Below, piece by piece: positions 19,208 to 54,985 of a DNA stretch of 64,000 bases. This stretch comes from Amphiscolops sp. MND2022 (Eukaryota): contig OZ076419.1 in the NCBI GenBank assembly GCA_964187785.1, forward strand, positions 41,044,001 to 41,108,000, in the 5' to 3' direction. Every line of letters starts with the position of its first letter. Positions within the stretch are counted from its first letter, which is position 1. Both the position numbers and the translations under genes were made by a program. The notes beneath the pieces are model-generated. The model ran no database searches and was not told where the DNA came from. It saw nothing but the letters and a program-made list of their open reading frames with translations.

Positions 19208-22200
19208 CTATTGGCTAATGAAATGATAGCTTGTGATTGGTTGATTGTCGATGGACGAGTTGTTCGAAATTTTGAATAGCTTGAAGTTTTTGTTGGTTAG
19301 CACTACATCGACTGCTTGAGCCGACGTGAGAGGCGATTTAACTGCTTCGTTCAGCGGGTAGTTCTGATAATACTGCAAAGAATTGCTTTCCGAGTTCATA
19401 GAATCTTCCGAAACTTCTGAAACGTCTGTAAATCCAGGTCGTTCCGCATCTTCTGAACAGTTTGAGAGGTTAAACAGTTTGTTGATTGTTCTTTTTCGAC
19501 CGCTGACCTCAATTTTCTGGCCGCGGTTGAACGATTCCAGAAGAAGATAGTTTGAGCTGGAAAATTCCGACGGGGAGTTATGTAACTGTTTGTTGCGTAA
19601 TGTCTCCACCTCGTTCAACAGACCAGGAATATCGTAAAATTTGCAGTCTTGCACCAACTGGTCGAAGTCTTTGAAGTCTTCAGGTAGTTTTAGACTGTCG
19701 TTTCTGAAACATACGCACGGCTCTGCAAATTTAAATCCAAACTATTGATAAGTATGACTCAAAAGTCTTCAACCCGGAACCGTAAAACACAAAAAGTCAA
19801 ACCTAAACCTTAGTCGTTCTTTAGTTCACTAAAACTGTGAATGAATGATATTCAGCATGGCTTTTTCTAACTGGAAACATCAAAAAAGCAAATTAAGGAC
19901 TTCCCGATCGATTAAAACAAACTCGACCAAAAATTGCACAGTGCCAAAGAAACACCCAAAATGGAACCCTTTGATCTTTTACAGCTTTGCCATTCATGAC
20001 ATTGTAAAAAAATTGGACCCCCAGCTGAAATTAAACTCCGTCTTTTTGCTTGCTTCGGAAACCAACGTTGTGTAACTTTTAGGCCAACCAACTGTAATAT
20101 CGACCGCTCTATGCATTTTCATCGTATTCGCATCTGTCTTTAATTTAATACGTGACTATATTAGTCAGACATTTTCAGTTTTAACTAAAAGCGCTGGCTA
20201 TAAACACAAAGAGTCAAGCTAATTCCTAGATCAAAGCTTTTAATTGGCTCAAAAAATTTACCAGAGATCTTATACCTCCTGACCTATAAAATTTCTTGAC
20301 AACAAAGATCAATTGATGAAGCGTTTAAATTTCATCAATGACGTATATATACACCACTGATAATAGGACTTCTCTGCCTTTTAGAGTGTGGCCTTTTGCA
20401 TGTGCCAGATAGCATGATAGCTATTTGAGAGTTGGTGATAGTTTTTATGATACGTGGACGGGCGCAAGATTGTTCAATTTGCGAAATGTTAATGTATTGG
20501 GCAATTAGTCAGATTTTATCATATTCATGATTTTTTCTGATCAAACCCTATTTGATTGAATTTACTTCTATTGGATTTAATCATTGAATTATTCTCGAAT
20601 TCATGAAGTATTCACGATTGAATTCAACCTCAAGAACCTTCGAATAGCCCCTCAATTTCTTCGAATAGAAGTCGCGTCCGAATATAGGCCGCCCCCGATT
20701 AGAAGCAGTATTAAGCCTGAAAATTTCATCCTAAAAACTAGAGCTTACAGTATTTCTTCGAATATAGGCCGCGAAATCGCTAGGGAAAATTTTACAAGTC
20801 GCGGCCTGTATTCGAAGAAATACGGTAATTGTTTTTTAGTCGGCGCTTCATGAAGTGAAACGCGACTATACTAGTGACTCTTTTTTAATCCACACAAACT
20901 GACCAAAAGAGTTCTACCAAAAATTCTACAAATTTAATGGGACCAAATTGTACTATTTGGCACAGGGAACTGAACAATATTAGCGCAAGATACAAGACCG
21001 GACGAGACTAAGGGGTCCCCCTTCAATTTTTTGATAATTTGCAACAGAATGAATGTTAAAAAATCCCAAAGGGTCCCCCTTTCACATTTTTAGGCACTAT
21101 GAGACTGTTATAAATTCTATTTTTCCTCAACAAATATCCACCGAAAAAAGTTTTTCAATACTATCCAAAGTTTTGACGTTTTCTCCGAAGAAAGTTGCGT
21201 TGTGTGTCAGGACATTTCGTCCTATGCAATTTCAACCTATGCAATTTCAACCGCTGCCAATTCAACCGTTTACAATTTCAACCGCATGCAATTTCATCAG
21301 TTCACACTTTCAACCGTTTGCAATTTCAACCTACGGCAATTTCAACCTATCACACTTCCACCTAATTGCTCTCAAACCGTGCTAATTATGAAAGCCTTTA
21401 TGGTAATTAGTAAAGCTATAAAAAGAGTCCATCAACTAACAATAATCTTTCACACTATGAAATGTGATAATTACTTGCAACGTTTTAGTAGTATAAATAG
21501 CGAAGTAAACTGAATTGTAACTAGTCCACACAACAAGTCCGATAATTTTGAATCTCAAAGCTCAAAATGTTATTTCAAATCATAAAATCAAATAGAGGGG
21601 GCAATATTGCAGTACACAACGGTTACTGTTACAATCAAAAACAAGTCACTTCAAGTTGCATTCATTGGAGATGCACAAAATACTATTCAATTAAATGCCC
21701 TGCCGTTTTGAAGACAAACCAGAACGTGGTCATTAGTTTGAAAGACAGTCACACTCATGAAAGCGACCCTTCCGAGTGTAAAGCGAAAGAAGTTGTTAAC
21801 CAAATTAAACAGAAGTCAGAGTCATTGACACCAACGGTGGCCATAGCAAGTGAAATTTCGGTAATCTCCGACGAATATGCAATCCAGCTTTCATTGCCGA
21901 AAAAAGAAAATTTAATCAGAACAGCTTGCCGCAAGCGACAAAGAGAGAATAGAATTGACGCCCCAACCCCGATTGATCGCCATTTTGACATTCCAGAAGA
22001 ATTCAAAACTTTTCTTCTGAAAGACAGCGGAAAAGATGACAGCGAACGAATTTTGATGTTTGGCGATACAACAATGAAAAATTCGCTTAATTTTTCAAAA
22101 ACATGGCTACTTGATGGAACTTTCAAATTATCACCGGACAATTTTTACCAAATATACACAATCCACATCGAGTTAAAAGGTTTTGCACCCCCTTGTGTTT

Positions 22201-24029
22201 ATTTGCTACTACCCAACAAAACAGAAAAAACATTCCCGAATGCTTGAATTGCTCTGCGAAGAAACAAACGCCAAACCTGATCGCATCCTTGCAGATTTTG
22301 AAAAAGCAGCATTGAACGCATTCAGCAAAAAATTTCCCGATGCGAACCAGTTCGAGGCCGCTGGCGAAGGAGTGGCAAGGACAACTAACAGCGTAGAAGG
22401 ATGGCATTATGGACTTCAAGCTTATTTCACTGGCTCCCAACCAAACGTATGGTTGCTTCTACGGAATTTGGAGAAAGATTCGAAAATGCAGAAATTTGAA
22501 TACCTTCAAGAGACGACTGGAATTGTTTGCTCCAAGCGCCCCCGTTATGAAAAAATCAAAAAACAGATGCAAGTCATACAAAGTGGCTACACTTTCGAGA
22601 ACGTCTTGCCTCATTTGCGAGCAGTCGCCAACTTTAGATGAAAACAATGAACTATTTTGCTGCATTGATTTGTTACTTTTTTGATATGATTCATTTTTGT
22701 GAGTGTGTATTTGAATTTCGCGTTTTGCTCAATTCAATTCTTACAATGGGAATAATTTTTAATCAGTTACAATTAACTGGCACCCGGTTGCGTCCTCCCC
22801 CGGGTACCCAAGTTTGGCGCACTACTCCCCATAACTGCTCTTTGATGTAGCCACATTAGAACCATGCCCGTGAAACCACAAGAGCGTGACAGAAGAATCA
22901 GACCAACCTTTTAAAGGAGTAGCACTTGTCTAAGTTGTTAATTGTAACTGAATGTTTTTTAAAAATGAGGAATTTTAATAGCGTTTAACCGAAAACTTTC
23001 TTATCACAATTGTTCAGTCAGTTCACTTTCACACTTTCAAATAGACGTCATCGATGATAAGTTTTTGATCGCGAATAGCATGTTGTTGAATGCTTTTTCA
23101 AAATGTGTCATACGATTACATCATTCTGTCCTTTTCGTACATTGCAAATTTTAGTGCAACGAAAGTTTCCAATGCGTTCAATATTATGCGTCTTGACAGT
23201 TTGTGTGCTTTTTATTTGCCGCGCGTCGATTATGTTCAATTAGTTTTAGGACGTTCGCAAAGAACGCAACGACCTTGAACTAATTAAAATAGGTTGAAAT
23301 GGCAAGCGGTTGAAATTGCAAGCGGTTGAAATTGCATGCGGTTGAAATTGCGTGCGGTTGAAATTGCAAGCGGTTGAAAGTGTAATAGGTTGAAATGACA
23401 GCGGTTGAAATTGCATAGGTTGAAATTGCATAGGACGAAATGACATGTAATCTCACTAAAGAGGAGGGGTTTGAAAATATTGCGCTATATCCGAAGTTTT
23501 GACATTATATCCGAACTATATTGCGTTTCACTAAGGAGGACGTTCGAAAACAAGCGCACCCATTTGGTGCTTATATTCTAACACTAATTGGGACGAAGCG
23601 GAGGACTTCGCGCAAAAAAATCTACCGCGCCCAGTCCAGCAGTTTGGTCTCCCTTTGGAGTTTTTCGGGTAATGTGGAAGAGAATACTTGACGCTTTGAA
23701 GTCCTTTTGCTATTTTTGAGCCTTAGATATGGCGCCGAATTGGGCCGTTCCCGGCTTGTTCACACTACCTGAGATAATTGAGTACATGTTGAAACACAGA
23801 GGGGTCCCTGTCTATGACGTAACACTGACGGGCGGGGTCCCAGTTTGGTCCATTTTCGCCTGCACCCAGGGTGAGTTTGTGAAGAGTGCTCTCGGGCGCC
23901 TTCATCAGGGTGGCGTTGGCAGTGCAAAAGACGGAGCCCCCCACGTCTATTGAACAGAATGGTGAGGGGGGTAACTGCAAGGGAGAGAACTCGCCCAAGA
24001 TTTCCGACAACAGCTGCTGGTCACCACCA
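19208..24029 (-). CDS. KCTD1/15-like T1-type BTB domain, two exons (24029-23769, 19703-19208)
   Basis: TTGCAG| acceptor, AG|GTAGTG donor (phase 2) and TTTCAG| acceptor join to give SIDVGGSVFCTANATLMKAPEST...YVIDRDPSVFQHVLNYLR|NDSLKLPEDFKDFDQLVQDCKFYDIPGLLNEVE. Stop TAG at 19210-19208. Confidence 0.9.
21210..23445 (+). mobile_element. Mutator-like (MULE) DNA transposon with long repetitive TIRs
   Basis: Left CATTTCGTCCTATGCAATTTCAACCTATGCAATTTCAACCGCTG (21213) is the reverse complement of the right end (to 23442). Both TIRs are arrays of AATTTCAACC. No TSD found. Confidence 0.9.
21567..22641 (+). pseudogene. FLYWCH-MULE transposase, frameshifted and internally deleted
   Basis: FLYWCH (HNGYCY...HWRCTKYYSIKCPA...HTH), then DGTFKLSP...YQIYTIH, frameshift near 22230, ADFEKAALNAF, and RTTNSVEGWH. 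The CxxH and insertion domain expected between KKFPDA and RTTN is missing. Confidence 0.88.
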
Positions 24030-24698
24030 CTGCAAAACAATACATAATTGATTTCAAAATTGATATAATTTATGCATTTCATCAAAATCATGATAAGACT
24101 TCTTGTAGCCTTTATGATGAAACATATTCAATCAAAAACCAGATTTCTTAACTTTAAAATTCTGCTATGGAACTGTTGAAGCAATGGCGGCTATATTATG
24201 GGAATTTTTCGAAACTAGGGAAAAACGCAAGTAACGCCTGAAGGCCAAGGCAAATTCAAGGAAAACCATTGAACATGGAACGCACACCAAGTTTACTCCA
24301 AGATATTGACACTTGTGGCCAATGTTTTTCAATGGATGTCAACTAGAGTTCACAAAAAGACACCACTAAGTAAAGTTTTGACACCACTAATCAGCAATTT
24401 AACGGATTAGCGGCGAAGAATTTTTCAGCGGTTCTCTTAGCGATTACAATTTGCGGCAACTAATAGATGGTCCAAATTCGAAATTTCCTCGGATAAGTAT
24501 AAAAATTCTAGCTTCCTCCTTTTGTGCAAAAATGAATTACATCATCGTTTAAATTTCAACCATTCTTGAATTCAAACATTTATTAATTTGAAGAAAATTT
24601 TCAGCGAAACAGCAATTTTGAAGTTTGCGGTTTAGCAATTAAAAATTAGTGATGTGAAAACTCTGAGGCAAATTGACCTTTCCATAAATGGCAATGAC

Positions 24699-27191
24699 CT
24701 GTTATGGATGTTGTTTGAGGGGTCGCTATGGTCCCTGTTCGGAGCACCAGCAACCGATGCTGTTGACCTGTGGTCCATGACGTCACTACAATTGGTGTCA
24801 CTGCTGCAGCCCCCTAGAGAAGGAGAGTCGCTGCGCCCTCGGCTGTTGACACCCACTGCTGGGCCGCCCAGCGACTGGTGCGGGGAGACGTGGGTGCCAC
24901 TCGACAGTTGGTTCGAGTTGGGCGCGATCGGCTAAAAACACAGACTATATGGGTTCGGCACTTTAAAGAAGCTCTGCGTATATGGCATTTCTGAAACCAA
25001 ATTTCTTAAAGAAGCAATAAGGCAATACACTGTTTTAAAACAAAAACTGATAATTATTTAATTGGAGTGAGGAACTTGAAGTTAGTGGGAGAAAAGATTC
25101 AGCAATCTCATATAGCCTTTGATTGGGGCGCTTTTGTCTGGTAACCGTGAAGTCATCAAATTGGATGTCATCACGTGTGTGTGCTTGTTTTGGGTTAAAA
25201 AATTCGGAAAAGAGTTCTAGCATACCTTATACTGGCTTTTGATTTTGTTGATTGTGAACTGTTTCAACTGCTGTTTGTACTGGTTAAGAACTCTGGCTAT
25301 AGCCATATACTCTCTGCTTCCGGCGTACATCTTGTTTAAACTGCCTCTGGGCCTCCCTCTGGCTTTGGGTCCCCCAACACCCCCCAACCCCCCTCCAAAG
25401 GAACCCCCCGACCCCACCAGACGGGGACCAGGAAGGATGGCGGGGTAGCTCCTCAGGTGCTGCAGCGAGTTCAACTGACTTCCAGCCACGCCACCCAAAG
25501 TGACACCCCTTTTGTTGTTGTCATCGTGAGTAGACAGGTTGGGAGTCACCATGGTGGGGAGACATGAATCCGAGTCAGTCCTCGCTCCTGCAAAATCGTT
25601 TCGAAATAAAAACGGTTTTTCTCCCACATTTTTCTCGATTTGATTTTTCCTACTTTTATAAATTCTAGATCAGAGTCAGTTTTTTCCTACTTTTATAAAT
25701 TCTAGATCAGAGTCAGTTATTGTTTTTGGGTATTATTGGTTATTTGGTAATATGATTAGCCTAATAACATTCCAGGCGCTTGAATTATTGGGAATGTTCT
25801 GGAATTCCATCAATACCTGCCAGTTCCATTGCATGTTGTTTTCTCCATCCGGGAGGTCTGCCCCTCCGCTTGTATACTGCGTTGCTATTGGTGAATTTGT
25901 TCATGGTGTTCACTGAAATATATTACTAATTAGATAATTAATCTATTACTTAAATAATTAATGAAAAATTGTGGCATTGGTTACTCACACAATTGCAGCT
26001 AGTTTTGTTGCATTCAAATTGTTGCAAAATGTCATCGATTTTATGTTTGAGAGAATGAACTAAAATCCGTATAAAACTCAACCGGCATTGGTGATTGCTG
26101 AGCGTTTATTTTTGAAGCGTTGCATTTGACACTAAAAGTCTTGCATTTATAAACCTAATGAAAGTTTTCATGGTAAAGCTCAAATGAAATTGGAAACAAT
26201 TCGACCCTAAAAATATGTTACCTGAGACCTTAACACAACTGACTTTTAAGCCTTACATATCTGATCTTTGATCTTAACAAAACTGAACTTTAACCTTAAC
26301 AAAATTGACCTTTGACCTTAACACAACTGACCTTTGACCTTAACAAAACTGGCCTTTGACCTTAACACAACTGACCTGCGCTGCCATTGTTTGAAAATGA
26401 GTCATTGTGGTGGGTGGGGTTATCACTGTTATTGACAGGTATCTGTTGGACAACAGTGGCCGTATTAGCCCCAAATTCTCCCACACAATTGAAGCCCCCT
26501 TCGCCCTCTGTGCCCTCGCCCCCCACCAACTTCATGTAGGACTCCACCGTCTCCTGACACTGAGAGGTCAGGTCAACTGGCAGGTCACCGCCCGAGTCCA
26601 TCTCACACGAATCGAACTCACTCTCGTCTATCTCCAATCCACATTCGCCCTGGAAAACAATTTCACACAGTCAATCATTCAATTTCATCCAGTGGGACTG
26701 TTATTGACACTGTAGGGAAGCTCTGCAGCTTGTGCGGTCCTATTATTCATGTTTGAAAAGAAAAAGAAGGCAAAGAAGTAGAGTTTTGTCAATTTCATCC
26801 ATTCAAAACACACCTGTCAAACAAACAAACAAGCTGCAAAGTTGCTTCAAAAAAGTGTGCATTTTTTAATGAAATGACCAAATGAATTTTTTCGGTTTGA
26901 TTCAACTTGATTCCATTGGGTTGAGGTTGGATATTTAGAAACCAATTGTGCAGATACAGTTCAGACATAGCCCAGTATCCGGAACAGAAAACCCGGTTGT
27001 CTTACTCCTCTAGATGCGATGTCATCAAGCTTGTCCCTGAGGTGATCTGGGTACAAATTATTGATGCCCCCCTCGGAGACGGAAAAAGAGTCATCGGCGT
27101 TTGTACCCGTGACCCCAGTTGCCTCTTTGACCCCATTGATGCCCCCGTTGACACTGTTGGGGGTCAGAGCTCCTCCACTCAGAACCTCGCT
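24699..27191 (-). CDS. Four low-complexity exons with an AT-hook upstream of the BTB exons (27191-27006, 26649-26376, 25587-25226, 24931-24699)
   Basis: All junctions are GT-AG and phase-compatible (0, 1, 0, 2). The third exon encodes GPKARGRPRGS (~25369-25340). An alternative donor at 24678 has the same phase. Confidence 0.75.
25644..25718. repeat. Direct tandem duplication, about 37 bp x2
   Basis: TTTTTCCTACTTTTATAAATTCTAGATCAGAGTCAGT occurs twice back to back. Confidence 0.9.
26222..26378. repeat. Minisatellite, about 21-22 bp unit
   Basis: About six copies of CCTTAACA(C/A)AACTGACCTTTGA variants. Confidence 0.85.
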
Positions 27192-27280
27192 CTGCAACAT
27201 ACATGCAACATTGATGCAACATATATGCAACATGGATGCAACATTCATGTTAGACATAAGTTGAAGACATAAGTTGAAGG
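27192..27280. repeat. Short tandem repeats (ATGCAACAT; CATAAGTTGAAG x2)
   Basis: Five TGCAACAT copies at about 11-12 bp spacing next to the acceptor at 27192. Confidence 0.8.
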
Positions 27281-28575
27281 AAGACCAGAGTAACATTAAA
27301 ACTGATCAGAGGTGCAGTGGCACTCGGATATTTTCAGAACAAAATAGCACCCAAATGTAAAAAAAATAAATACAGTTTACGATGGAATACAATGCTCAAA
27401 GGCAATGTGAGGTGTTCCTGTGGCTGGAAATACATATTAGACCAAAACTATAAGTTTGACGTCTTGAAAAGTTCAGAAAACATCCAATTCTAAACAATAT
27501 TGGCGAAAAATGATGTAGGATTTAAATATAGAGGTTGCATCAAACCTACTGATGGAAACAAATTCATATTACTGATTGTGTGACTGGGCCGTTCATTTTT
27601 GCTAAGTTTGCAAAACAAAAAAAATAAAGTTTTAGGAACTTTTTAAATTTTATTACCCAGTAACTCAGAAACTACTGGTCAGAGGAAAACTCAAAAATTT
27701 TACAGCCTCGACACTGTTCTTCAGTTTTTCCTAGACGCATTTTCTGAAAATGTTTTGGTTAAAAATGAACTGGCAAAAATTGTTTTAACAAATTCAAAAG
27801 TGAAATTGTCTTCAACTTTTTGGTACTCTACAGTATTTGCATTCTTTTCCATAGTTTCTTCCCAGATGAAACTTGGAGATTAGTTGTTACGGTGTTAACC
27901 GTGTTCCGGATTTTATTCGGTTGAAATGAGCATTTTTAATTATTCTACTGTTCGGTACTGTTGATAAACATTTGTTAACCTACCAAAAAACTTTGTTCCC
28001 ATATGAGATCGATCATTATATAAAATAGCTCGTGAGAAAACATCAGTACTGCAAATGTCTCATTCCGCAGAACATACTAGCTTAGCTTCATAAAGACAGT
28101 CATCCTGTTTTTGAACAGCAATCTTATGGTGTTTTGAATAATGTGGCAGAGATCGTCTGAGATCTTGTTTACTAACAACCTGCTAAAAACCAAGTTGAGA
28201 GACACTCAATCAGTCTGTTTAAAGCATTTTTTACTGCCGTACGCGATCGATTACAACTATTTAATCTGTTCCTTTTAACGATGCTGTTAAAATTCAATAC
28301 ACCCAAGACCAAAAGTCACTTCCATAGTTGTAGAAAAAAGGCTCTCTTGAATGATTGCTTCAAGTCGAAAAACTTTCCACGAAATTCTTGCAAGCGAATG
28401 TAACGTTGCAAGCTTCAAACTGCACTGTTCTTTCAAGCTCTCAAAATTTCCAATATTTGTCAACAGATGTTTCAAATTAACTTTGAAGACTGCGATTTTC
28501 ATGATGGCAAATTAAGAATTTGACAATAAAAATTGGATCTTGTATTTCAGCAGCGTGGTGAGAAAGAATGCCCAC

Positions 28576-31500
28576 CATTTCCGGAAGTAGCTGATTGACC
28601 AAAACAGTGGCTCGTATAGAGTATCCGGTCCAGAGTTTGTTTTTATCCCAGCCCGCTTTCTCTGCTATGTTTTTCATGAAGTGCGCCAGATTGTTTTTCC
28701 CGATGGGCACTTTGGAAAACCACCTTCCGTTCTGAAAGTTGGCTCTTTTTTGTCACACCAACTCCACGCAAAAGTTTTTCGAACTATCATTAGTTTTGAA
28801 AAAAAAAAACAGAAACCCACAGATGTTCATCAAACGGATCTTGCTCCAGCTTCAGAATTATGGGAAATTGTCAGAAAATAGGATCAAAAGGTTTATCATC
28901 ATAAGAAATTTTCAAACATTAGACATGAGAATAATCCCTCAGCTGTGGTCTTTCCCTGTTAAATTTGCAAATTTGCCAAATTCCAATTCTATCCAAGAAA
29001 TCCAGGAGTTTCTTCCACACAATTCAACGACAAAAAATTAGACTACTTTTGGAGATATATTAATGGAAATATATTTATGGAGATATGATTTTTTTTCAAA
29101 AAATTGTCTGGAATGCAACAACTCCAAAATAACCACTACTGGTTCTTTGCCAAATGTGTTCTTTCAACAACAATTTTAAGATTTGTTATTGGAAAAAGAC
29201 CCTGTTGTGAAAAAAAGTGTCAACTTTTGAAAAATAACTTTGACTCTGGAAAACAAAAACGAGCCTGCATGTCCGTGCAAGGTCTGCAGTAGAAAGATTG
29301 GGCGCCAGGTGGAATTTTGGACATGTACAGCTTAATCAGACGCATAGGACAATTTGGGAGACCATTTGGGTGAATTTCACCCCTTTTCTGCAGAGAATAG
29401 TACCCCTTCAGCAGTTCATAGTTTTCGCGACGCTTCTCCACGTATTCAATCACTTCATTCGGAGGCATCCCTGGATAGTTGTTTTTACTTCCCTTCTAAG
29501 TTTGGAACTTCTCCCGCAAAAATTTTCAAAAATTTGGGTAAACAATTTTAGTAAAACTCTTGCAAAATGCTTCAATCTATTACTAAATGTTTCAGTTTCG
29601 AGGTCTAAATGATTCCAAAAAAGATGAGAAATCACATACCAGAGCCGCATGTGCGGTAAAAAAAAGTCGGAAACGAATTAAAATATTGAAAAACAAATTA
29701 CGTACTTCATTGTCATTTGGTCATTTTTGGACTAATTCTGGCTATGTTTCTCAGATGCCAGTCATACGATTTTGACGTCATTGAGCACACAGGAGCAACT
29801 TTGGGTGTAGAATGACTGTGCAAAATTTTATAAAAATAGTATGGACAGTTTGAGAAATTTGAAACTTTCATTGAAAGTTCGGGAGAAAAAAGGTACGAGT
29901 GCATAAGTAGTCAAAAATTTTTTCCGACTCACAAAAAGTCTAAAATCATATGATCTTTTTTATTGGTAATACTATAAACATGACATAGGGGAAGCAAGAA
30001 AGGCGTCCCTCGAATTTGTATCTGACTGGCAGCTCCCCACCGGAGACTTCGATGTTCGTCCCTAGATCTGAGGGCAAAATGTTTGGCCAGCAAAAAGTAG
30101 ACAGTGTGAATCAGAGTGGACGGGTTCGAATCCCCGAGGATGCCTTTTTTAGTCATGTTACTTTCCTCATTTAGTGCTTCAGCTTTCAGAAGTTTCAAAA
30201 AGACCCCAAGTAAATAATGCAATTTGACATTTTGAAGCCAAACCATTTTCGATGGTAGATAAGTTTGCTGAAAAATTGAATATACGCAGCTTGTTTTAAA
30301 CGTTTTTGATGTAGTCGAAATTCAGTTTGAAATCATTTGAATCTTCATGGAAAAGTTTCATTCGTGGGCGTTTAGGGTGTGAAAAACAGTCCAGACAGAT
30401 ACCGAAGGATTTCTTGATGAACTTTGAACCTGTCTTCAAAAAAAACAGCAGAGTTTTTGAAACCAGAGCCGCATATGCGGTAAAGGAGTCGGCTTAAGTC
30501 TTTTTCCTTCTGACTCGCTTTCGTTCGAATCGTATGAACAGTTTGTGAGAAAATCGAAAAAATCGAAAAATGACTGTTTTTTGGCCATTTTTGGGCTAAA
30601 TTTGGCTATGTTTCTCACATCCCAGCCATACGATTTTGATGCCATTGCACATATAGGACTCTAATATGGTGTAGCATAACTGTAGAAAATTTCGTTTGAA
30701 TCGTATGGACAGTTTTTGAGAAAAGCGAAAAAAGTCGAAAAATGGCCGTTTTTTGGCCATTTTTGGGCTAATTTTGGCTATGTTTCTCACATCCCAGCCA
30801 TACGATTTTGATGCCATTGCACATATAGGACTTTAATATGGTGTAGAATAACTGTAGAAAATTTCGTTCGAATCGTATGGACAGTTTTTGAGAAAATCGA
30901 AAAAAGTCGAAAAATGGCTGTTTTTTGGCCAATTTTGCGCTAATTTTGGTATGTTTCTCACATCCCAGCCATACGATTTTGATGCCTTTGCACACGCAGG
31001 GGCCCCTTTGGGTGTAGAATGACTGTGCAAAATTTCGTGAAAATCGTATGGACAGTTTTTGAGAAATTTGAAATTTTTATGAAAAGGTCGGGAGAAAAAG
31101 AAAAAAAAACAGCACGATTGCATAAGTAGTCGAAAATTTTTTCCGACTCCTAAAAAAGTATTCGTTGCTTATTTCATCAATTTTTTAATAGAAACTATTG
31201 TCACAGCTTAAGTTTTGTACCAAATGTCAGAATAAATTTGCAGTGCCGTTCGTTCGAAGTTTGTTATTTTTTTCATTTCCTTACATCAGTGCGAAATTGT
31301 TTTGTTTCCTCATTTTCCGTGCAATTAAGCAACATAGCTGCCATTCCTTTAAGGTAGAGCTCTTGTTCCATCTCTGGAGTTATCACTTCGGCATGTCTTT
31401 TCCCTGGCACGGGTGTACAATGAGTTATCTCTAGAGCCAGACTGTCGAGATATTCCAGTGTTCTGGCAAACTCTGGCTTTAGCATGTTGAAGTCTAACTC

Positions 31501-34500
31501 CATGCTAATCAAGCATCGTGTTTACAACAATCAAGTAAGTAATTAAGTATACAATCGTGTAATAAAAGAGTGGACCTTAATTTGATTTCAATATTTTGAA
31601 CACTTATTATATTTCCGGTGGTTATAAAGGTTTCGTTAAAATTTGTTTTCTAGTTTACATTGGCGCTTCTTTGAAGTTTTTGTGATAAACATTAATGAAG
31701 ATAGCGAATAATACCTCTATGAATCATGATTTCGACAGTTTGTAATTTAAAAAGATGACACCTCAAAAAGATTTCCAATTCGATTCCTTTTAATCTTCAT
31801 TTTCATCAGTGTCTGATGATTACAAAGTCAAACTTCACAATCATTAGTGCTCAAACATCCAGGGAAAACCGACATTCCTACCAAAATAATTTGCGTACAA
31901 GCAATAAAATTCGGAAATGGAACTGACTCTACGGAATAACTACTTTTCTTATTCTCAAGAAACTAAAAATTTGTTTAGCACAGGAATTTCCCGTGCTAAA
32001 TTCTTCCCAAGTTTTTGCGAATAATACTAGATGCTGATGGAATGCTAGGAAATACTTTCCACTTGGCATGAGGCGGGTTTCTCTGCCTGATGACGGGTGT
32101 TGAAAAGCAGGAGGACACAGGTTTGAATACCGCACTAAACTGAAAATTTTTGTTAGGCTAAGAGTGACCAAAGCGCCTCCTTTTAATTTTAAGCCACGGC
32201 ACTGTGACTTTTTGTGAACTTTTTTCAAAAGTAATCTTAGCTACTTTAGCAACATAACTTTCAGCAAGTACAAAGCATTTTTCGAGCCCAGCGGCCTCAG
32301 TGTTTGGCACAGAGCGACTTTCCGATGAAAATTATTTTCGCTAGTGTGAGATTTATGAGAGTCCTCTCAACGATCGTTCTTGAGCAAAATCTACGGATTT
32401 CTGTTACAAAATACAACTTCAAAATGCTCTATTTTCGGAATGTTAACATCATTCCCGAATTATATCGGATCTTGCGAGGACGAAGACAAAACAAATACGT
32501 TTTCTTGGATTTGCTTTTTCGGAACTCCTCTTTCATAAATGTATGAACTAGTAGGTTTCAGAAGAGTTGAGATTTTTTAGATCACGAAAAACCGATACTT
32601 TTTGTCAAAAAAATGACGATGGAAGATGTCAGATTTTTTTCAAGAAGTGTCCCAGCAAAATATATATGGCATATACATTCCCTGTTGTATTCGAAGTTTA
32701 CGTATGACAATAGAAGACAATTGAAAATATAAACTGAATCTGTTTTTAGTGTGCGCTTTTTGAGAAAAAAGTGCCCCATTTTCACAGAACTAAGTTTTTT
32801 GTCAGCATGGACTGGATGGTCCACTTTATTGTTCAAATTTGTTCAACTTCGTCAGTGATTTGATGTGGCCGTGAAGCAACTCTACAATGTATCTAGGGCC
32901 AAATTAAGTAGCAAAGGGCCACACTTTGAGGGTTTTCGACGCTATACGACCTTTTTTTGAATAGGTTTTTCGATGTTTTTAGTTACAAAAAAGTCTTTAC
33001 GAGTTCAAAAGCCGCCTTTCCAACTTTGACACTCTAAAATATACAAATATTTCATGAAAGCCATCTTGAGGATAATATTGATACTTTGAGATGGTTGAGG
33101 CTTGAGCGGAGCGCCGATTTTACACGTTCTCGTCTTGATTGATAGATTATAGAATAAACTAATCACCAGAAAGTAGTATAGACTGTGGAATGAGTTTAGT
33201 CTCTAGAGCTTACTGTTCTGACTTATAATGATTGACCATAAACTTCATTGCCATATCTACATATAGTATTTTTTTTTGCTTTCTTGGGTCATGCAGTAAA
33301 TGAAAGATACAAGTTTTACTTGCTTGAGAACCAGCTTCATGGAGAAGCCGCGGCTTTTGGTTGGTTATAGGTCTCAATAACCGCAGATACATCACCATCA
33401 AAGTGCGAATATTATTCAAGAGGCTCTGAGTCGATGGTTCAAACAACTCTAACAAGTTTAACCCTAATTGACCTGGGCGTTTTTGCAAATTTTCAAAAAT
33501 TCTGATTAGAAATTTTAATTCAATATCTCCACAACTACGCGTACCAGAGAAACGAACTATAGCACGTTTGAAAGATCTGGTATTGGGCTTTCATTTTGGC
33601 CAGGTGAGCCCCTGTCGCCGCGCGCCCTATTCTTTTTTTTTCGTGTTTTTTAGTTTAGTTTCTTTTTCCGGTATTACTGCTTCGCGTGGGGCTTGTAGTA
33701 ACAACAGGATATCATTGGGGTTTGCTGCACAAGGACTTGTTGTGGAAGGGTATGTGGTTGGTTTTTTCTATTGATCAAAGACTTGGGGAAACTGGATTTC
33801 GTCAAAAACTGAGTTTTGGGAAAGTGTAACCATTTTCTGTGCAAAAAAAAACATTTTTCTCGGATTTGAAGACATATTCACTTTTTCTAATGCTTGTGCC
33901 ACTCAAATCAATCTATGTATCAATGAACTTTTGAAAAAAAAACTGTGCTAGAGAGTATGGGCTGCTGGCAAAAGGAATCAGAAATTGAAAAAAGGTATGC
34001 TGCTTTAAAGTACCACTAGGTTAATTAGGGTTAAGTAATCTTTAAGTTGCAAATCCTATTTTTTTGAGGAAGATGGCTTTAAAATTTTAATGACTAGCTT
34101 GTGCTCCTAATTTAGGTTCTGAAAATATTTATTCAAGGTAATGCAGGTACGAATCACTGCAGGCAGGTACAATTTCAATGCAGCATGAACAATTTTGATT
34201 TCAACTTCACTTCGGTATGCAAGGAAATGAACCGAACTGTTTAAAATATGAGGAGTCCGTTGTAAACATGATGCCTTTTTATCATCATCTGCATCACATT
34301 GTAGAAGTAATGCAATTGTCTAACAGGGTAAGGTCTTCCGTCCTTTTTACATACACATTCCCATTTCCCCTCCAATTGTTAGAAAAACACTGAAGCAAAT
34401 TTCTGTCTCCTTTTCACTTTCTACAAATCAAAAACCCCTCAAAGCATTCACATTCCGACAAAACGTCTCCCAAAAATGCACTTTTTAAAACGCTATCATT

Positions 34501-36608
34501 GAAATTTACTCAAGGAAATGAACTTTCAAAATTTTCATCATCATTTCAACTTTCAAAAAGACGTTGAAATTTTTACATCGCCATGTAATCCAGTTGATTA
34601 GAATATGATAAATAATATGACTTCCTCCGGGTGTAACCTCTAGTGGAATCTGCTGGGAAGTTTTTCATGCTGCTTCCATGCACACTTTTCCTCACTAACG
34701 TTTCCTTACAAAACATGGAAATTTCTGAACACCCGCGTTTAAAGAAAACTTTGCAGGATTACAATGCAGCTTCCACTATTTAAATTAAAGCCGAGGACCA
34801 TGTTTCTTATTCCCATGTACTCCTTGTTTTGCATCCCCCAACACAAAAAACTTCTATTTTGAAAAAGGCTTTTACGAAAAATTTTAAATGGTTAACAATT
34901 TTTAATGGTTATAACAAGACATAGTATAATTTTCCAGCAAAAAAGGGCCCTGATTTTTCATATTATTGTCCAAAGTAGCAAAAATTCACACCTGGAACAA
35001 GCCGAAGTTGTATAGAAAGGTCCTTACCACACATTTTCCCCGCAAAAAAACGAAATTGGCAACTTTTAAATGCTCATCAATGTGAAAGATAGGATTATGT
35101 CAAATATTATTGCATAGGATTAAAATTCCATATAACTATGTCGACATAGTGGTATTTGAACCTTGTTTATTATTCCCCCGCTTGTAAAATATTTCCCTCT
35201 TTTTCAACGCTGTCAATCACTTTTTTCACACTTCATTTTGTTCAATAATTAACTTGAGTATTCACTGTTATTCAAATTGCACGCTGAATATGGCGCTACT
35301 TTGAAATCAATAAAGCGACTGAAGTTGATTTGCATTAAATTGGCGGTAAAATTGATAAAGTCTCAGCTGCATTTAAAAATAGATTTGATGCATAAAAAAA
35401 CTTCGATGCGCGGATTTGCTGCCAAATTTAGGATGTATCGTCTAAGCAGCTTGATAAAATTCAATTGAAACTGTGAAATTTTAATACATGGAAGTTGCCG
35501 CGATAGTTCTGTAAAATCATGATAAATTAGCTTGGCAACCTACGAAAACTTGTGAAAAGTTCGAACAGTTTCAATTAGGGACGTCATATTTTCGAGCCGA
35601 TCTATGTTTTTGTCATAGCTGTTTCACACTGTATTATCATTTCAGGAGTGATGATTAGTGGGGAAAGAGAAAATTTAGTGATTTTGCTCCCTTTTTGCGG
35701 ACTTCTGAGAAGAACAGGGGCAAAAAGTGATCTATATCGGGAGTGAACTTTGAGAACAGAGTTTTCAGTTCGCACACAGGGAGGCCTGGGTCTGCTTTCT
35801 GTCTGTTGCGGAGCCACCTACAATAATCTTTACCCCTAACCGTCCTTCCATCCCTTCCTCAACTGGCCCTCAAACCATGAAAACTGGAAATATTTTTTAA
35901 AAAGCAGCCTATATCTCATAAATGGGAAAAATTATTTCCCAGCTGCGTTTTTTTTCACAAACTAGGTGTACTCTTATTTTCAGTCAAAACGAAGTGTTTT
36001 TTAAACAGAATTCAAAGATGAAAAACATTTGCTTCGCAGAATTTCAGCTTGTGAAGGTTTTTGAAATTAACTTTTCTCGAAAAAGCACATCAAGTTTGAA
36101 CTTTTTGAGCAAGTTTTGAACCATTTGTTGAACTTTTTCATATAACAAAATTATTGATTCTGCGTTTTCACTTGTGTTGCTAGATTCACGAAGGAACATA
36201 TCCCGGTTGCGCGTGTCTCGTTAGAATTAAAAAAAAAACAAGATGATTTCTTTTCAAACTTGAATTATTTTTAGCAGTAAAAATCATTTTTCAATAGAAA
36301 ACTAACGAGAATCAATGTTTTTAATCTTTAAAATGTCAACTAGTGAACAATCAATTTTCCACGCACATCACGTTTTAAGGTGAATGTTCCAATTTTCACT
36401 GTAAAAATCATTGTTTAAAATCTTTTCGCTATATTTACGCTCAAAAAATCGTTGGGATTTTCATTTTTATTTTAGAGTATAAAAAAGCTATCCACGATGG
36501 TTGGTTAGGGATAAAAGATTGTACCTGATCCAGATTTTTTCAAGCGAATCTATGGCCCTTCTGGAGTTATCGCTCAATGGAGAGGAGAAGGTGTCACAAT
36601 TGTTGTAA
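28576..36608 (-). CDS. DUF3504 (Crypton tyrosine-recombinase-derived) domain, seven exons: 36608-36525, 35817-35691, 34342-34275, 31504-31347, 30143-30009, 29470-29265, 28731-28576
   Basis: The joined translation is continuous and family-typical: SDNSRRAIDSLEKIWIR|WLRNR...DHFLPLFFSEVRKK|DGRPYPVRQL...MQMMIKS|MELDFNMLKPEF...ITPEMEQELYLKG|ILGDSNPSTLIHTVYFLLAKHFALRSRDEHRSL...IQIRG|MPPNE...NCPMRLIKLYMSKIP...FYCRP...Q|NGRWFSKVPIGKNNL..FMKNIAEKAG...WTGYSIRAT. All phases agree. The start of the first exon is uncertain (36608-36659). Confidence 0.85.
29640..29930 (-). mobile_element. HINE-like family B, monomer (another monomer at 43090-43390)
   Basis: Inverted pair AGTCGGAAA (29665) / TTTCCGACT (29921). 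Hairpin CCGC-ATGT-GCGG (29645-29656) lies outside the 3' inverted repeat. Confidence 0.65.
30464..31149 (-). mobile_element. HINE-like family B copy with internal 172-bp tandem expansion
   Basis: Same ends as the monomer (CCGCATATGCGG...GAGTCGG at 30469-30492; TTCCGACTC at 31141-31149). Internal unit anchors at 30601, 30773 and 30945. Confidence 0.75.
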
Positions 36609-38429
36609 CTGGGAGACAAAACAGCATCAGTCATTTCGCACTCATTCATCTTTTCAGGCTTCCCAGATTATTAACAGCTTAAATTGCGTAACAGCTAGGA
36701 ACAATTTCTATCAATAATTCGAAAAATTCCTTAAAATTCAACTAATTTTCGTGATTCTATGTAAGTTAGATAAATAAGTGTAACTTTCGTTTACTCGCCA
36801 AAAAACTTCCATGTTTTCCATTTCTTTTAAAAGTGAGAATTGCCTCGATTTGTTGGGGGAAAGGGGTTGATATAAAGCTTCGGAAGTGACGTCATAGGGG
36901 CTTTAATAGAGGCGACCAGAAGTACTTCAAAGCGTCAAGCAATCTCTTTTGAAAAAAATTCTCAATCTCATGTAGCCAAAAAAAAACAGAAAGGGGACCC
37001 TTTGTGCCTAAAAAGGCTTTTTTCTTGCCAGATATGTAAAACGCCAAAGCTTTCTTCCTGTTTTATAATCCAAGACAGCCAGGAACCAGAGCGCGAAGCT
37101 TTTGTCAAATAAAATTTTTCGCAAAAACGTCGCAAAGTGTCGAAAAAACCCTTTGGTCCTAAAAACGCTTTTTCTACCCGAAAATATCAAAAAAACAAAA
37201 GCGGAGACTCTTTTAGAATACCGAAACGTTTCAGCAAAAAGGTCCCACAGTTCCGAAAATAACACTCAAAGTCCAAAACCGTTCGCCAAAATTGAATGGG
37301 TAGACCACAAAAAATTTACTATTTTTGTGGGAATTTTATGGTCACTTCGGCCGGAAAACCCGACGGAAAGTCACTATAGAAGTCGTGTATCATTTCATAA
37401 ACCGCCCAACTAAAAATCATCAGCATTGAAACTCGAACAAAAAAGGGCAATATGTAAATTGGATTGGTTCCAAAAAGTCATGTTTCGCATAAAAAGAGTT
37501 TTAAAAACACTTCAATTCCTAATCTTGGCATAAATATAAAAAGACGTTAAGAGAGTGTAATAAACTCGTATTGAAGTGAAATAATTAATATGAAAGGATG
37601 AAAAAGATACAGGGGGTTTAAAGAGAGCAAAGAGGACGCATTTTACAATTTATTGGATCATCATGAACATTTAAAATCTACCCAGGGTACGGGTCTGTGA
37701 TTGGTAACATCTGGATTTTGACGAAATTTTTGCAAAAAATGCAGTTTGATTCGTGTTTTATGGTAACAATGGTGTTTGCTGTTTTTACTTTTTATTGAAG
37801 GGGCTAATTCGTTGTATAAGACAGTTCTTTCTGAAAAGAACACTTACCCAACATGATGATTGGGGTTGAAGATTCAGGTAAAAATTTTTAGTTCTTTCTT
37901 CTTGCGATAGTAGTAGGTGTTTAATTATTGCCAATTAAATAGAAGAAACAGAGTTGCGTCATTTCTATGAGAAAAATTTGATTCAGATTTGCCCGATATA
38001 CTTAGTCATTTTACAAAAATATCATTTATTGATTTTATTAATTCTAATTCTTGAATTTCAATTATAAAATTTCAACAACCTACCTTTTTTGAGAAAAAAA
38101 AAACAAAAAACCCTAGCAGCGGTCAAACTCGGTGTTTCAAGCAGGAAAGAAAATTTGATAATCTGGGAGTTTTTTCTGTCTCACTTTCTTCTGTCAATAA
38201 GTGTTTCACAAAGTTTGCACGATGTTGATAAGAATTGAATGTGGAAAAGAGCTAGCTAATCATGAAAACTTCGTGACAATGAACAAAAAGTCAGTTGTAT
38301 GCATTTGTTAATGACTTCTAGTTTCGGTTTTTCAATTACACAAACCAATGGTCCGATATTTCACACCGTAATTGAAAACCACGTTTCCACTCAATGATTG
38401 ATTTTTTATGAAGTTTTCCACTAATACTG

Positions 38430-52000: not shown

Positions 52001-54985
52001 TTTGACCCCAGGTGAAATGACGTGATCATTGTCGTTCATATTCTGGTCTTGCATGTGTCTCAACCCAGACACGTAACTGGATTCCCCATCTGGATCCGAC
52101 AGTTTCTGGTCCTCGGTCGACACGTTTTCCCGGAAAACATCCGGTCCGGAATTCAGTTTCGGTTTTGTTTGTCTACCACAGTCTCAGGGATAACCAATTA
52201 TTTATTTGTCAGGTGTAATCAAAAGAGTCCTCGGTACTATTCTGATGTAAAAATATAGGATTCATTCAAATCATGATCCTCACAGTGGCGTAGTTTGAAG
52301 ATCTTGAATGGAGAGGCGGAAAACATCTTTATACAAGGAAAGAAGCTGGAATGTGAGAATTTTGAAAATTTCAAATCTCAAAAATTGGTTCGGTTTTCCG
52401 ACACATTCGTAACTACCGAGAAAGAAATTTATAAAAAGCTCCATGTAAGAACTAAATGATTTCAATCAGAAAATCTCATGAAATCCTACTTCTAAAAAGA
52501 TTTCAATCAATTCATGAAGTTATTAAATTGAAATTTTCCAAGGGGCGACCGGTCGCCTTTTTGCTGAAAATGCACTTATTCCGGGAAAAAAGTTTCAATG
52601 ACTATTGTCCGACAAAAATTTTTCGTTATGAAACTTGTAATGAAAACTAAACCTGTTTTCTTCGGCAGTAGATTTATATGAAACATAAATTATTGGCGTG
52701 ATTATGGGCGCCAGATCGGAAAAAAAATTGAACTCATTTTGCGTCTGAACCGAGAGTGTTTTAGATGAACGTTGTATCTATATTATTTAATTTTTGTCCA
52801 ATTTTATCTTCAGGAAATATTCTATTTTCACACTACAAAACCTGAAAATTCTAGGAATTTAGTTATTTCAAATTAGAGACTCACTAAAAAAACTGATGTT
52901 ACTTCTAGATATAAACTTTTCCAATTTTCTGAGCAAAAACATAGAAACTCTTCGCAAACGCAATTTCAAAATTTCGAAGTTAATTACAAACATGCCGGGA
53001 ACGGCCCAAGTCGGCGCCATATCTAAAGCTCAAAAATAGCACAAGGTCTTCAAAGTGTCAAAGTATTCTCTTCTAAAGTGCCCAAAAGTTGGACCGAACT
53101 GACGCGCCGGGTGGCCGCTACCGTGGGTCCCTGGCGCGCTAAAAGGGGGGACCCTTTCGGATTTTTTAACATCCATTCTGTTGCAAAATAACAGAAAATT
53201 GAAGGGGGACCCTGTGAAAGCTTAAAATTTTTCGGAAAAAGGCTCATAATTCCGAAAAGGGGGACCCTTTAGTCTCGGCCGGTATTGTATGTTACGCTGA
53301 AAAAAGGAACAACCTTTTTAGCTCAGTTCTCTGGGCCAAATGGTTCAATTTGGGCCAATTTGGTTCAAAATTTTGTAGAACTGTCTAGAATTATTTTGGT
53401 CAGTTCGTGTGGATTGAAAAAAGCCACTAGTATAGTTGCGTTTCACTTCATGAAGTGCCGACTAAAAATGAAGCGTAGAATGTTGTATTTTCTGTATTTT
53501 CATTGGTCATGCCTGAACATGGTTGAGTCCTGGGCAGAAGCAACTGCCGAAGTGGGACTCGATGACGTCATGCTAGACGACGAGTTTCCATTGGCCAGGG
53601 CGGCTGACGTCACTTGCAGCAGATTGGCTACGGCGGCGGCAGTTGTCGTGCTGAGTGGGCCTGTCTGAGCTGCTAACTGTTTCAACATCTGCTGCTGTTG
53701 TTGGATCAGAAGTTCACTTGAAGACACCGGATTTAATTTATCACATGTCATGAAAAGAGAACAAACTAAAGATGTCCATTGAAGATTTTACAGAGAACTA
53801 CCATTTTTACGAATAATAAGCGCTGGAATGGAGAAAAGTAGCATTTATCGGTTTAATAGCGTTTTATTTGACCCGTTTATTTGGGACTGAAATCGTCAGA
53901 CTATTACAGTTGATTTTTAAAGACCGACAAAATTGTGAGGTCCTTAATTTAAAGGTTGGGCGGCCGATATGGTAGTCGGCGTGTTAATAAGCCAGTTTAC
54001 ATAGTGGCTTCCGAAGCAGAAGAACGGAGTTTGATTCGCCCTGGGGTTCAAACACTTCTACTTCAGTGGCCAGTGACAAAGCTGTATGGAACCTCTCATG
54101 ATTTTTTAATTCCATCAAAGGGTTCCCTCCCGGTTTGTTTTGAAATTTTGAGTCGAAAGAGAAAAAGAATTTTCAATCCTGAAAGGTATTTTTCGGCAAT
54201 ATACGATTTTTCCGAATTTGCACGAGAAACAGCCATTTGGCATAATTGAAAGAGTTGGCTCTCTCTGTGGGCCTTAAGCGGGATGCCGACTTTATCGTCG
54301 TTATATAAAACTGTTATCTGAACATTGAATAATGACGCTTTTATCTGAAGTATATATAAAATATAAAAACTATTTCAATTTGTTCTCAAAAACTTTGGCG
54401 TTACGGGTTGTCCGGGTCTATAGATCCCTTTGAAGTTTATCGAAAATATTGAACCCGTAATTGAACATGAACAGAAATTTATGAATTTCTGTTATAACAC
54501 ATACAGTTGGTGATACGAATATAATGCATGAAATTCTGATATAACGTATATAGTTATGAGGTATTATGGTTAATACCATGCGAGTTTTCCACGAACTAGA
54601 GGTGAGGAAAATCGGCTACCTTGAATCGGAAAATAACGCGTTCCATTATACTTCTTTCAGTGACAATATTTATTAAGAAGTATTCGATTTTTTCGTCCCG
54701 AAAATATATTCCAATGAAGTGAAATCAACAAGCGAAATCATCATAATTTTCAGTGTCGTGGCCTTTTAAATCCGGTGCTTGCCTGTAATTGGTTGACGAG
54801 GCGGTCGACTTGCCGAACTGTTGGGAGCTCTGCACGAAGTTGTTGGCGTGCGTTCCGAAGGGAGACCCGGCTGGGTTTTGTTGGGAGAATTTTTTGGACT
54901 TGATTTCGAATTGGTAGCCACAGCCACAAGCACGTTTGGCACTTGGGTGCATGGTACTGCAGTTAAGACACCGCTTCAGACCCAT
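52001..54985 (-). CDS. Three exons (54985-54783, 53716-53513, 52172-52001): UPF0547/C16orf87-like zinc ribbon followed by Q/S/A-rich low-complexity sequence
   Basis: MGLKRCLNCSTMHPSAKRACGCGYQF (C-x2-C-x10-C-x-C-G). Donors CAG|GCAAGC and CAG|GCATGA (GC, phase 2) and AAA|GTTAGT (phase 0). All phases are compatible. Confidence 0.65.
52989..53468 (-). mobile_element. HINE family A copy, complete (~480 bp)
   Basis: GCCGGGAACGGCCCAAGTCGGCGCC at the left (3' end); GTGCCGACTAAAAA at the right (5' end). Confidence 0.8.

Follow-up and report, generated by a model that had tools for sequence, protein, structure and literature searches.

Donors of the GA and GG types are vanishingly rare in most eukaryotes, and the known exceptions are one copepod and the appendicularian tunicates. 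Denoeud and colleagues are said to have described the non-canonical introns of appendicularian tunicates in 2010. In these animals, G*-AG and other non-canonical introns are numerous and mostly lineage-specific, yet the U1 small nuclear RNA (snRNA) is canonical (PMC13326754); a search of that paper for the terms found hairpins or inverted repeats at intron ends unmentioned. In the copepod Eurytemora affinis, GA and GG donors backed by RNA sequencing (RNA-seq) are lineage-specific, follow an obligate exonic AG, carry A at +3, and coexist with a canonical U1 5′ end (Robertson 2017, PMC5714493). No associated sequence feature was noticed in the copepod, and pairing of intron ends is not discussed in that paper. 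Here we describe a gene with such donors in Amphiscolops sp. MND2022, located in a stretch of 64,000 nucleotides (nt) of contig OZ076419.1 (positions 41,044,001 to 41,108,000; hereafter the window, whose own numbering is used below). The gene lies on the minus strand of the window, belongs to the DUF3504 family (PF12012), and has six introns, of which the last five (I1 to I5) have the predicted donors GG, GC, GA, GG, and GC. They probably represent genuine non-GT introns that form a young, structured class with ends joined by helices.

Introns with unusual ends or paired termini have also been described in other settings. Conserved terminal dinucleotides are absent from the non-canonical introns of euglenids and hemistasiid diplonemids. 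These introns are believed to be removed independently of U1, and an origin from miniature inverted-repeat transposable elements (MITEs) has been proposed for them (PMC12621601). Introners are defined by their multiplicity, nearly identical copies occurring in large numbers across different genes (Gozashti et al. 2022, 10.1101/2022.06.06.494994; PMC12130899). In the structure-dependent introns of teleosts, pairing near the splice sites replaces U2AF2 binding (Lin et al. 2016, PMC4691745). The introns studied here likewise show pairing near both splice sites together with weak pyrimidine tracts, but each has arms of unique sequence and many have non-GT donors. The pairing in the teleost introns reportedly depends on (AC)n/(GT)n simple repeats, and their donors are said to be canonical.

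Removal of the six introns, every one of which is bounded by AG/G...AG, restores the reading frame, an outcome beyond what chance would give. The seven joined exons amount to 1074 nt from ATG to stop, with no internal stop or frameshift in any exon, and encode a complete protein of 357 residues; an in-frame TAA TAA stands just 5′ of the start ATG. The model aligns nearly end to end with intronless homologues of 370 residues, with start and stop at matching places, and is 46–50% identical to homologues bearing PF12012 (49.6% over 282 residues with E 3e-105 for P0002; P0003 aligns over 336 residues). Placed in a multiple alignment, the exon pieces cover the intronless homologues with zero gap or overlap at all junctions. 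Exon 4 alone matches PF12012 with 30.6 bits (curated cut-off 29.7), while exon 5 (19.6 bits, E 0.001) and, marginally, exon 6 (12.2 bits, E 0.19) fall below the cut-off. The gene is present as a single copy: exon 3 has no second match in the genome, and the closest genomic relative of exon 5 is 46% identical.

An earlier sequence-only reading had placed the five non-GT donors directly after an exonic AG, and all five read on the minus strand exactly as it stated, with each intron ending in AG. For each junction, we listed every in-frame combination of donor and acceptor within ±36 nt or more and scored the joined peptides against five intronless relatives. For I1, the GG-AG pair gives the top score of 125, as compared to 103 for the best GT-AG pair, which deletes the conserved VRKK. 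The enumeration thereby bears out the earlier claim that I1 has no usable GT ahead of the next in-frame stop and that the sole GT upstream costs VRKK; a GC three bases on, at 35687, would add one residue. The GA-AG pair of I3 scores 150 against 134 for the best GT, which adds 10 residues inside the LYxKG-ILGD motif, and the GG-AG pair of I4 scores 114 against 96 for a GT that adds 8 residues. GT alternatives had been anticipated at these two junctions, and they do exist there (31333 and 29984), but a same-length alternative for I2 had been overlooked. It combines a donor at 34267 (CAT/GTTTAC) with an acceptor AG ending at 31498, scores 98 as opposed to 105 for the GC-AG pair, and yields MMIKRHHLDF in place of MMIKSMELDF, at the price of a poor donor and a distal AG. 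For I5, the GC-AG pair (156) preserves the 8-residue spacing from FYCRP to W that is typical of the family, and a GT at 29260 joined to the AG ending at 28743 scores 158 and adds five residues. Judged by homology, the three donors with a purine at +2 (GG in I1, GA in I3, and GG in I4) are firmly forced, while GC is the better, yet not the sole, predicted reading for I2 and I5.

The unusual dinucleotides are present in independently sequenced DNA. We aligned contigs from four DNA runs of one study, representing two samples, to positions 29860-35859 of the window. The GG of I1 is matched without any difference by contigs of all four runs, and the GC of I2 and the GA of I3 are matched without any difference in the three runs of one sample. 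For I4, all four runs have C>T at 30007, which on the gene strand gives GA instead of GG and never GT; position +2 of this intron is therefore a purine polymorphism, G or A, and never T. The non-GT dinucleotides are thus real DNA and not assembly slips, an error that the sequence-only reading had allowed for: GG, GC, and GA all recur in independent contigs, and GT does not. The exonic variants among those listed (30028, 30076, 31378, and 31411) are all third-position synonymous by a hand count of codons, an outcome with an expected frequency of about 0.006 under neutrality, and the unique portions of the flanking introns hold more variants than the exons, again among the variants listed. The restriction of the listed exonic variants to synonymous sites is a modest sign of a living gene. 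As a separate observation, the assembly departs from the contigs of all four runs at about 13 sites in block 29920-30444. In the three runs of the first sample, the adjoining blocks match it without difference; the assembly probably carries a divergent haplotype in block 29920-30444.

Donors of the same kind occur in a second gene. Using the intronless actin as a guide, we solved 19 introns in nine genes of the actin family, 17 of which are GT-AG. A divergent actin paralogue (L048) has a GG-AG intron (CAAAAG/GGATTT) and a GC-AG intron (CTCAG/GCAAGG), both at positions absent from other actins. The sample used for the comparisons below comprises 24 introns, namely nine lineage-specific ones, seven non-GT and two GT (six from the DUF3504 gene of the window, two from L048, and one from the DUF3504 paralogue L024), and fifteen actin introns at conserved positions. 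In this small and biased sample, for which the donor tally covers the actin-family and DUF3504 loci, the non-GT share is 7/24; a genome-wide frequency near 10% would be expected of introns of the Eurytemora type. All fifteen introns at conserved positions are GT, and relaxation is therefore not a general property of the introns of this genome. An exonic AG precedes nine of nine novel introns, including all seven non-GT introns, compared to 9 of 15 conserved ones, and A is found at +3 in each of the four GG/GA donors.

The feature that the lineage-specific introns have in common is complementarity between their ends. In all nine, the first 10–20 nt are complementary to a segment that ends 1–11 nt before the acceptor AG. 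In intron 0 of the DUF3504 gene, a helix of approximately 21 base pairs (bp) abuts both intron ends (arms 36523-36503 with 35841-35819), its duplex energy being −27 to −34 kcal/mol (z about −5.9), and the minimum free energy (MFE) fold of the whole intron pairs nt 2–25 with the last 27 nt. The helix of I2 starts at +1 and extends over 16–18 bp with one mismatch (arms 34274-34257 and 31530-31512; p=0.001), leaving a tail of 8 nt before the AG, and that of I5 also starts at +1 (arms ~29264-29221 and 28776-28741; p=0.004) and leaves a tail of 9–10 nt. In I5 and both L048 introns, the helix begins at +1 or even at the exonic AG. End pairing is also seen in I1 (arms ~35680-35653 and 34377-34348; p=0.04) and I4 (30008-29987 with 29515-29472; p=0.03), and it is weak in I3 (31340-31326 with 30164-30150; p=0.32). 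In the DNA, inverted arms of 12–20 nt are present in I2, L048_1, L048_3, intron 0, and the predicted 54782 intron described below. In the 3′ arm of the I2 helix, the second sample has C>T at 31517, the pairing partner of which is 34270; the contig of this sample shows eight differences there.

The duplex between the first 40 and the last 40 nt has a mean energy of −17.8 kcal/mol in the seven non-GT introns versus −8.1 kcal/mol in the fifteen conserved GT introns (p=2e-5), and when the true 3′ end is ranked among all other windows, the Fisher p is 2e-10 for the nine novel introns and 0.82 for the fifteen conserved ones. In an unbiased scan of 1788 windows spanning the next 9 kb, the donor regions of I2 and I5 each paired best with the segment immediately ahead of the acceptor placed by homology, and the MFE folds of whole introns pair the ends in all six short introns. 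Pyrimidine content at −20 to −4 is 0.42 in the novel introns compared to 0.63 in the conserved ones (p=0.001). Both GT introns at novel positions (intron 0 and the one in L024) also carry the helix, which therefore tracks lineage-specific introns and not the donor dinucleotide as such. All non-GT donors seen fall in the helix-closed lineage-specific class, and position +2 is evidently free in this class of young introns and not in conserved ones. Two details of the arms turned out to carry no signal: GTAA motifs near the 3′ ends are merely complements of donor-side TTAC in the helices, and a hand count of wobble mismatches in the arms (6 sense versus 3 antisense) is uninformative.

These results refine the proposal, made in the sequence-only reading, of a relaxed 5′ splice-site code that relies on the exonic AG. 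The homology-forced non-GT donors, the obligate exonic AG, and the presence of such donors in a second gene speak for relaxation, but its extension to the whole genome is contradicted by the conserved actin introns. The exonic AG is indeed present at all non-GT donors; since the seven non-GT introns combine an end helix with weak pyrimidine tracts, however, it is unlikely to be the only compensating signal. The same reading had listed GC donors at 54782 and 53512 in the neighborhood. For the former, a strong donor, an in-frame acceptor at 53717 could be located by end pairing alone, as an exact complement of CACCGGATTTAA ends 9 nt upstream of the AG; this predicted intron in a neighboring low-complexity coding gene was kept outside the statistics. 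For the latter (CAG/GCATGA), no convincing partner was found within 9 kb. The helix rule may thus be of practical use in that it located an in-frame acceptor in a neighboring gene from sequence alone.

The snRNA that reads the donor appears to be of the ordinary type. Seven of ten U1 loci read with ATACTTACCTG at the 5′ end, and the three variants (Table 1) retain the ACCTG end, which pairs with exon −3 to −1 and intron +1, preceded by A; this A is the partner of T at +2. Variant U1 5′ ends had been put forward as a possible counterpart of the donors, but none of the ten loci has a change that pairs with a non-U at +2, and U1 is canonical in this respect. Many U1 copies are clustered on contig 12. 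Neither the U12-type donor RTATCCTT nor the branch motif TCCTTAAC was found at the ends of the five introns, and readings as U12-type, recursive, or twin introns are not compatible with the sequences.

The parallel with Eurytemora, which the sequence-only reading had already drawn, holds for the donor pattern: in both organisms G at +1 is followed by A or G at +2, an exonic AG precedes the donor, A stands at +3, the introns are lineage-specific, and U1 has the canonical 5′ end (PMC5714493). In both, automated gene models would break at such introns. There are also differences. The non-GT introns described here combine paired ends with weak pyrimidine tracts, GA does not outnumber GG (in a small sample), weak GC donors belong to the same class, and the donors are known from DNA, whereas those of the copepod have transcript support. 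The host also belongs to another phylum, its nearest named relative being the acoel Convolutriloba macropyga: the intronless BiP of this genome is 94% identical to that of C. macropyga and shares 80–83% identity with the proteins of other named animals of various phyla, with a few fused or partial models lower. The genome measures 1.07 Gb, and the G+C content of the window is 33–42%, values similar to the published 1.10 Gb and 36.7% of the acoel Symsagittifera roscoffensis. The appendicularians, again of another phylum, share the canonical U1 sequence and the many, mostly lineage-specific, non-GT introns, but both intron ends vary in Fritillaria. The published genome paper of Symsagittifera roscoffensis does not mention unusual donors, and our literature search on acoels found no paper describing them.

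On balance, we lean slightly towards regarding the locus as a working, single-copy, Crypton-derived DUF3504 gene with six lineage-specific spliceosomal introns, five of them non-GT and closed by helices. In such a model, the major spliceosome would remove the introns, reading the donor from the exonic AG, G1, and usually A3, and would tolerate any base at +2. The terminal helix would draw the donor and the branch/acceptor region together and so offset poor U1 and U2AF binding. The introns would have been born by insertion events, as the helices and border repeats suggest, although the parent repeat family was not found. Several observations weigh against this model. The sample of 24 introns is small and non-random, end pairing is weak in I3, and I2 and I5 have the GT alternatives given above. 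Helices that include +1 must open for U1 and U6 and could therefore hinder splicing. No RNA run of the organism was found, and splicing at the non-GT donors is consequently something that we infer: run searches with the locus and with the intronless actin returned only DNA-like runs of the organism and, otherwise, small shares in soil and marine metatranscriptomes. Protein searches found no transcript-derived or annotated protein of the gene or an orthologue. An exhaustive search of representative proteins with exon 5 gave no match above 55% identity, a word search with its open frame gave zero matches, and a profile built from the homologues and exon pieces returned only three ENA proteins. 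A wider proposition is that acoels possess a class of young introns defined mainly by an end helix and AG/G...AG, and not by GU and a pyrimidine tract, in which the major spliceosome would routinely accept GG, GA, and GC; we put this forward tentatively, as possible but short of probable.

The most serious competing view accepts splicing at the non-GT donors but takes the helices to be inert remnants of inverted end-repeats once carried by transposons (hAT/MITE-like introners), the odd donors being whatever the element end or the duplicated target supplied. The inverted complementarity in I2, I5, and both L048 introns is followed by a 3′ tail of 8–11 nt, and border repeats are present (AAAAAGG, 7 nt, in I1; AAAGG, 5 nt, in I3; AGGGA(C/T)GCCT in I4; also AGGT). 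Every such intron occupies a lineage-specific position, introners are known in two animal groups including copepods, and the MITE origin proposed for euglenozoan introns with paired ends offers a precedent. Indeed, an insertional origin is plausible, and lineage specificity, inverted terminal complementarity, and short border repeats are all shared with introners. The copy number, however, is not. No second copy exists in 1.07 Gb for intron 0, I5, the donor-proximal 230 nt of I2, or the termini of L048 intron 3; as the four termini tested are single copy, which speaks against recent transposon relics, no introner family was found, and only nested interior repeats are multicopy. Nor is there a consistent target-site duplication: the 8-bp flanks of the best arms, the length of a hAT duplication, match at 22/80 positions (27%), which is background, flanks of 2–10 nt of the best inverted arms are at or near background, and exon and intron tails agree at 36% versus 27%, which is not significant. 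Junction microhomology (4.0 nt versus 2.9 nt in conserved introns, p=0.05) is marginal and was given no weight. The end sequences, moreover, vary from intron to intron, and near-perfect arms of 13–21 bp persist even though a nested interior repeat in the same intron (L048 intron 3), which has thousands of relatives, is only 75–80% identical to them. Arms that stay near-perfect in otherwise unique sequence predating a diverged nested repeat are a hint of selection on the helix, and we consider inert relics rather unlikely.

If only nearby canonical GT donors were used, the protein would differ from its relatives by small insertions, deletions, or substitutions, which the alternatives for I2, I5, I3, and I4 would permit. 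We hold this to be very improbable, given that I1 has no such donor except at the expense of VRKK, that the options for I3 and I4 lengthen the best-conserved DUF3504 motifs, that the option for I2 calls for its very poor donor and distal AG, and that the helix geometry suits the GC donors. A decaying pseudogene, broken by insertions and never spliced, would agree with the lack of RNA evidence, with the many DUF3504 copies in the genome that have stops or frameshifts, and with the transposon debris held in the introns. We strongly disfavor it, because the six interruptions share the same borders and their removal leaves an intact 357-codon frame with a homologue-like start and stop, because the exons are free of stops and frameshifts and the locus is single copy, and because the flanking introns are more variable than the exons, in which all listed variants are synonymous. 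Excision by a non-spliceosomal machinery that recognizes the helix, as proposed for the euglenid and diplonemid introns, could account for the extensive end-joining pairing, the short border direct repeats, and the weak pyrimidine tracts, as well as for the very weak U1 match at the GGAGCA, GCATCA, and GCTCGT donors, a poor fit to U1 being another trait of those introns. But the host here is an animal, the invariant AG/G...AG supplies every intron with the spliceosomal hallmarks of G at +1, a 3′ AG, and an exonic AG, whereas the euglenozoan introns lack conserved terminal dinucleotides, and the same structural class includes the GT introns of this gene (intron 0) and L024; such a machinery seems to us highly improbable.

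Under the favored model of helix-closed spliceosomal introns, a third unrelated animal lineage would show the repeated evolution of relaxed recognition of +2. The link between end helices and non-GT, lineage-specific introns is new here and, together with the weak pyrimidine tracts, suggests a testable mechanism both for donor tolerance and for the spliceability of new introns. If the wider proposition on acoel introns is correct, they would stand beside the structured non-canonical introns of Euglenozoa as an animal equivalent, and might offer a snapshot of new introns becoming spliceable. There are also practical consequences, as gene finders and read mappers restricted to GT and GC will truncate or split such genes. 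The position of Xenacoelomorpha in animal phylogeny is much debated, and their gene sets feed phylogenomic and evolutionary developmental work. The features of the gene and the related loci are collected in Table 1.

Table 1. Coordinates of the DUF3504 gene, the predicted neighboring intron, and the variant U1 loci (window numbering unless a contig is given; a slash marks the splice junction)
Feature	Position	Strand	Description
Exon 0	36525..36649	-	start ATG 36649-36647; aligns to N-terminus of P0003
Intron 0	35818..36524	-	canonical GT-AG, CAG/GTACAA...TTGTAG/G, 707 nt, lineage-specific position
Exon 1	35691..35817	-	ends ...FFSEVRKK, phase 0
Intron 1 (I1)	34343..35690	-	GG-AG, AAG/GGAGCA...GTAAAAAG/GAC, 1348 nt
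Exon 2	34275..34342	-	DGRPYPVRQLHYFYNVMQMMIK, phase 2 at end
Intron 2 (I2)	31505..34274	-	GC-AG, AAG/GCATCA...GATTAG/C, 2770 nt
Exon 3	31347..31504	-	SMELDF...EMEQELYLK, phase 1; two listed variants, both synonymous
Intron 3 (I3)	30144..31346	-	GA-AG, AAG/GAATGG...CTAAAAAAG/GC, 1203 nt
Exon 4	30009..30143	-	ILGDSNP...QIQIR, phase 1; DUF3504 core; two listed variants, both synonymous
Intron 4 (I4)	29471..30008	-	GG-AG in assembly, GAG/GGACGC...ATCCAG/GGATGC, 538 nt
Exon 5	29265..29470	-	MPPNEV...FYCRPCTDMQ, phase 0
Intron 5 (I5)	28732..29264	-	GC-AG, CAG/GCTCGT...CTTTCAG/AAC, 533 nt
Exon 6	28477..28731	-	runs through stop codon 28479-28477
Predicted intron, neighboring low-complexity coding gene	53717..54782	-	GC-AG, CAG/GCAAGC...TCTTCAAG/T, in frame
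Variant U1 5′ ends (L019, L020, L021)	G000 C13:49602042, C12:24071965, C7:41249350		ATATTTAAACCTG, ATTCTTACCTG, ATACTTACTTG

A number of further observations concern the surroundings and relatives of the gene. A search of Rfam gave zero matches in the window. The interiors of I3 (30460-31156) and I4 (~29693-29937) hold a very high-copy repeat in tandem units of 172 nt, three full and one degenerate in I3 and one in I4, with 29886-29937 resembling 31105-31156; its summed contig depth exceeds the single-copy level by a factor of ~10^4, and contigs are interrupted at 30460 and 31156. Among the DUF3504 paralogues, most junctions considered as introns proved to be frameshifts, and conservation at L011 was too poor for an intron to be placed. 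One paralogue (L002-L004, G000 C3:2082695-2085130) matches thrice at a spacing of 993 bp within one open frame of 1055 residues, a tandem repetition of an intronless DUF3504 unit. Stops or frameshifts are present in other copies, and a further exon match lies about 10 kb past the end of the window (C11:41118330-41118461). A divergent intronless actin (L034, G000 C1:85049071-85050189) has 6–10% of its sampled words in soil, leaf-litter, and marine metatranscriptomes, which are probably conserved actin sequence of other organisms. As the DUF3504 gene (28477-36649) has a start and stop of its own and matches its 370-residue homologues over their length, it need not be joined to the neighboring interval 19208-28476 in a fusion with an AT-hook and BTB domain. 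Finally, the donors of the GC-rich exons at ~26500-27200 of the window are of the usual GT kind, and these exons may be part of another gene.

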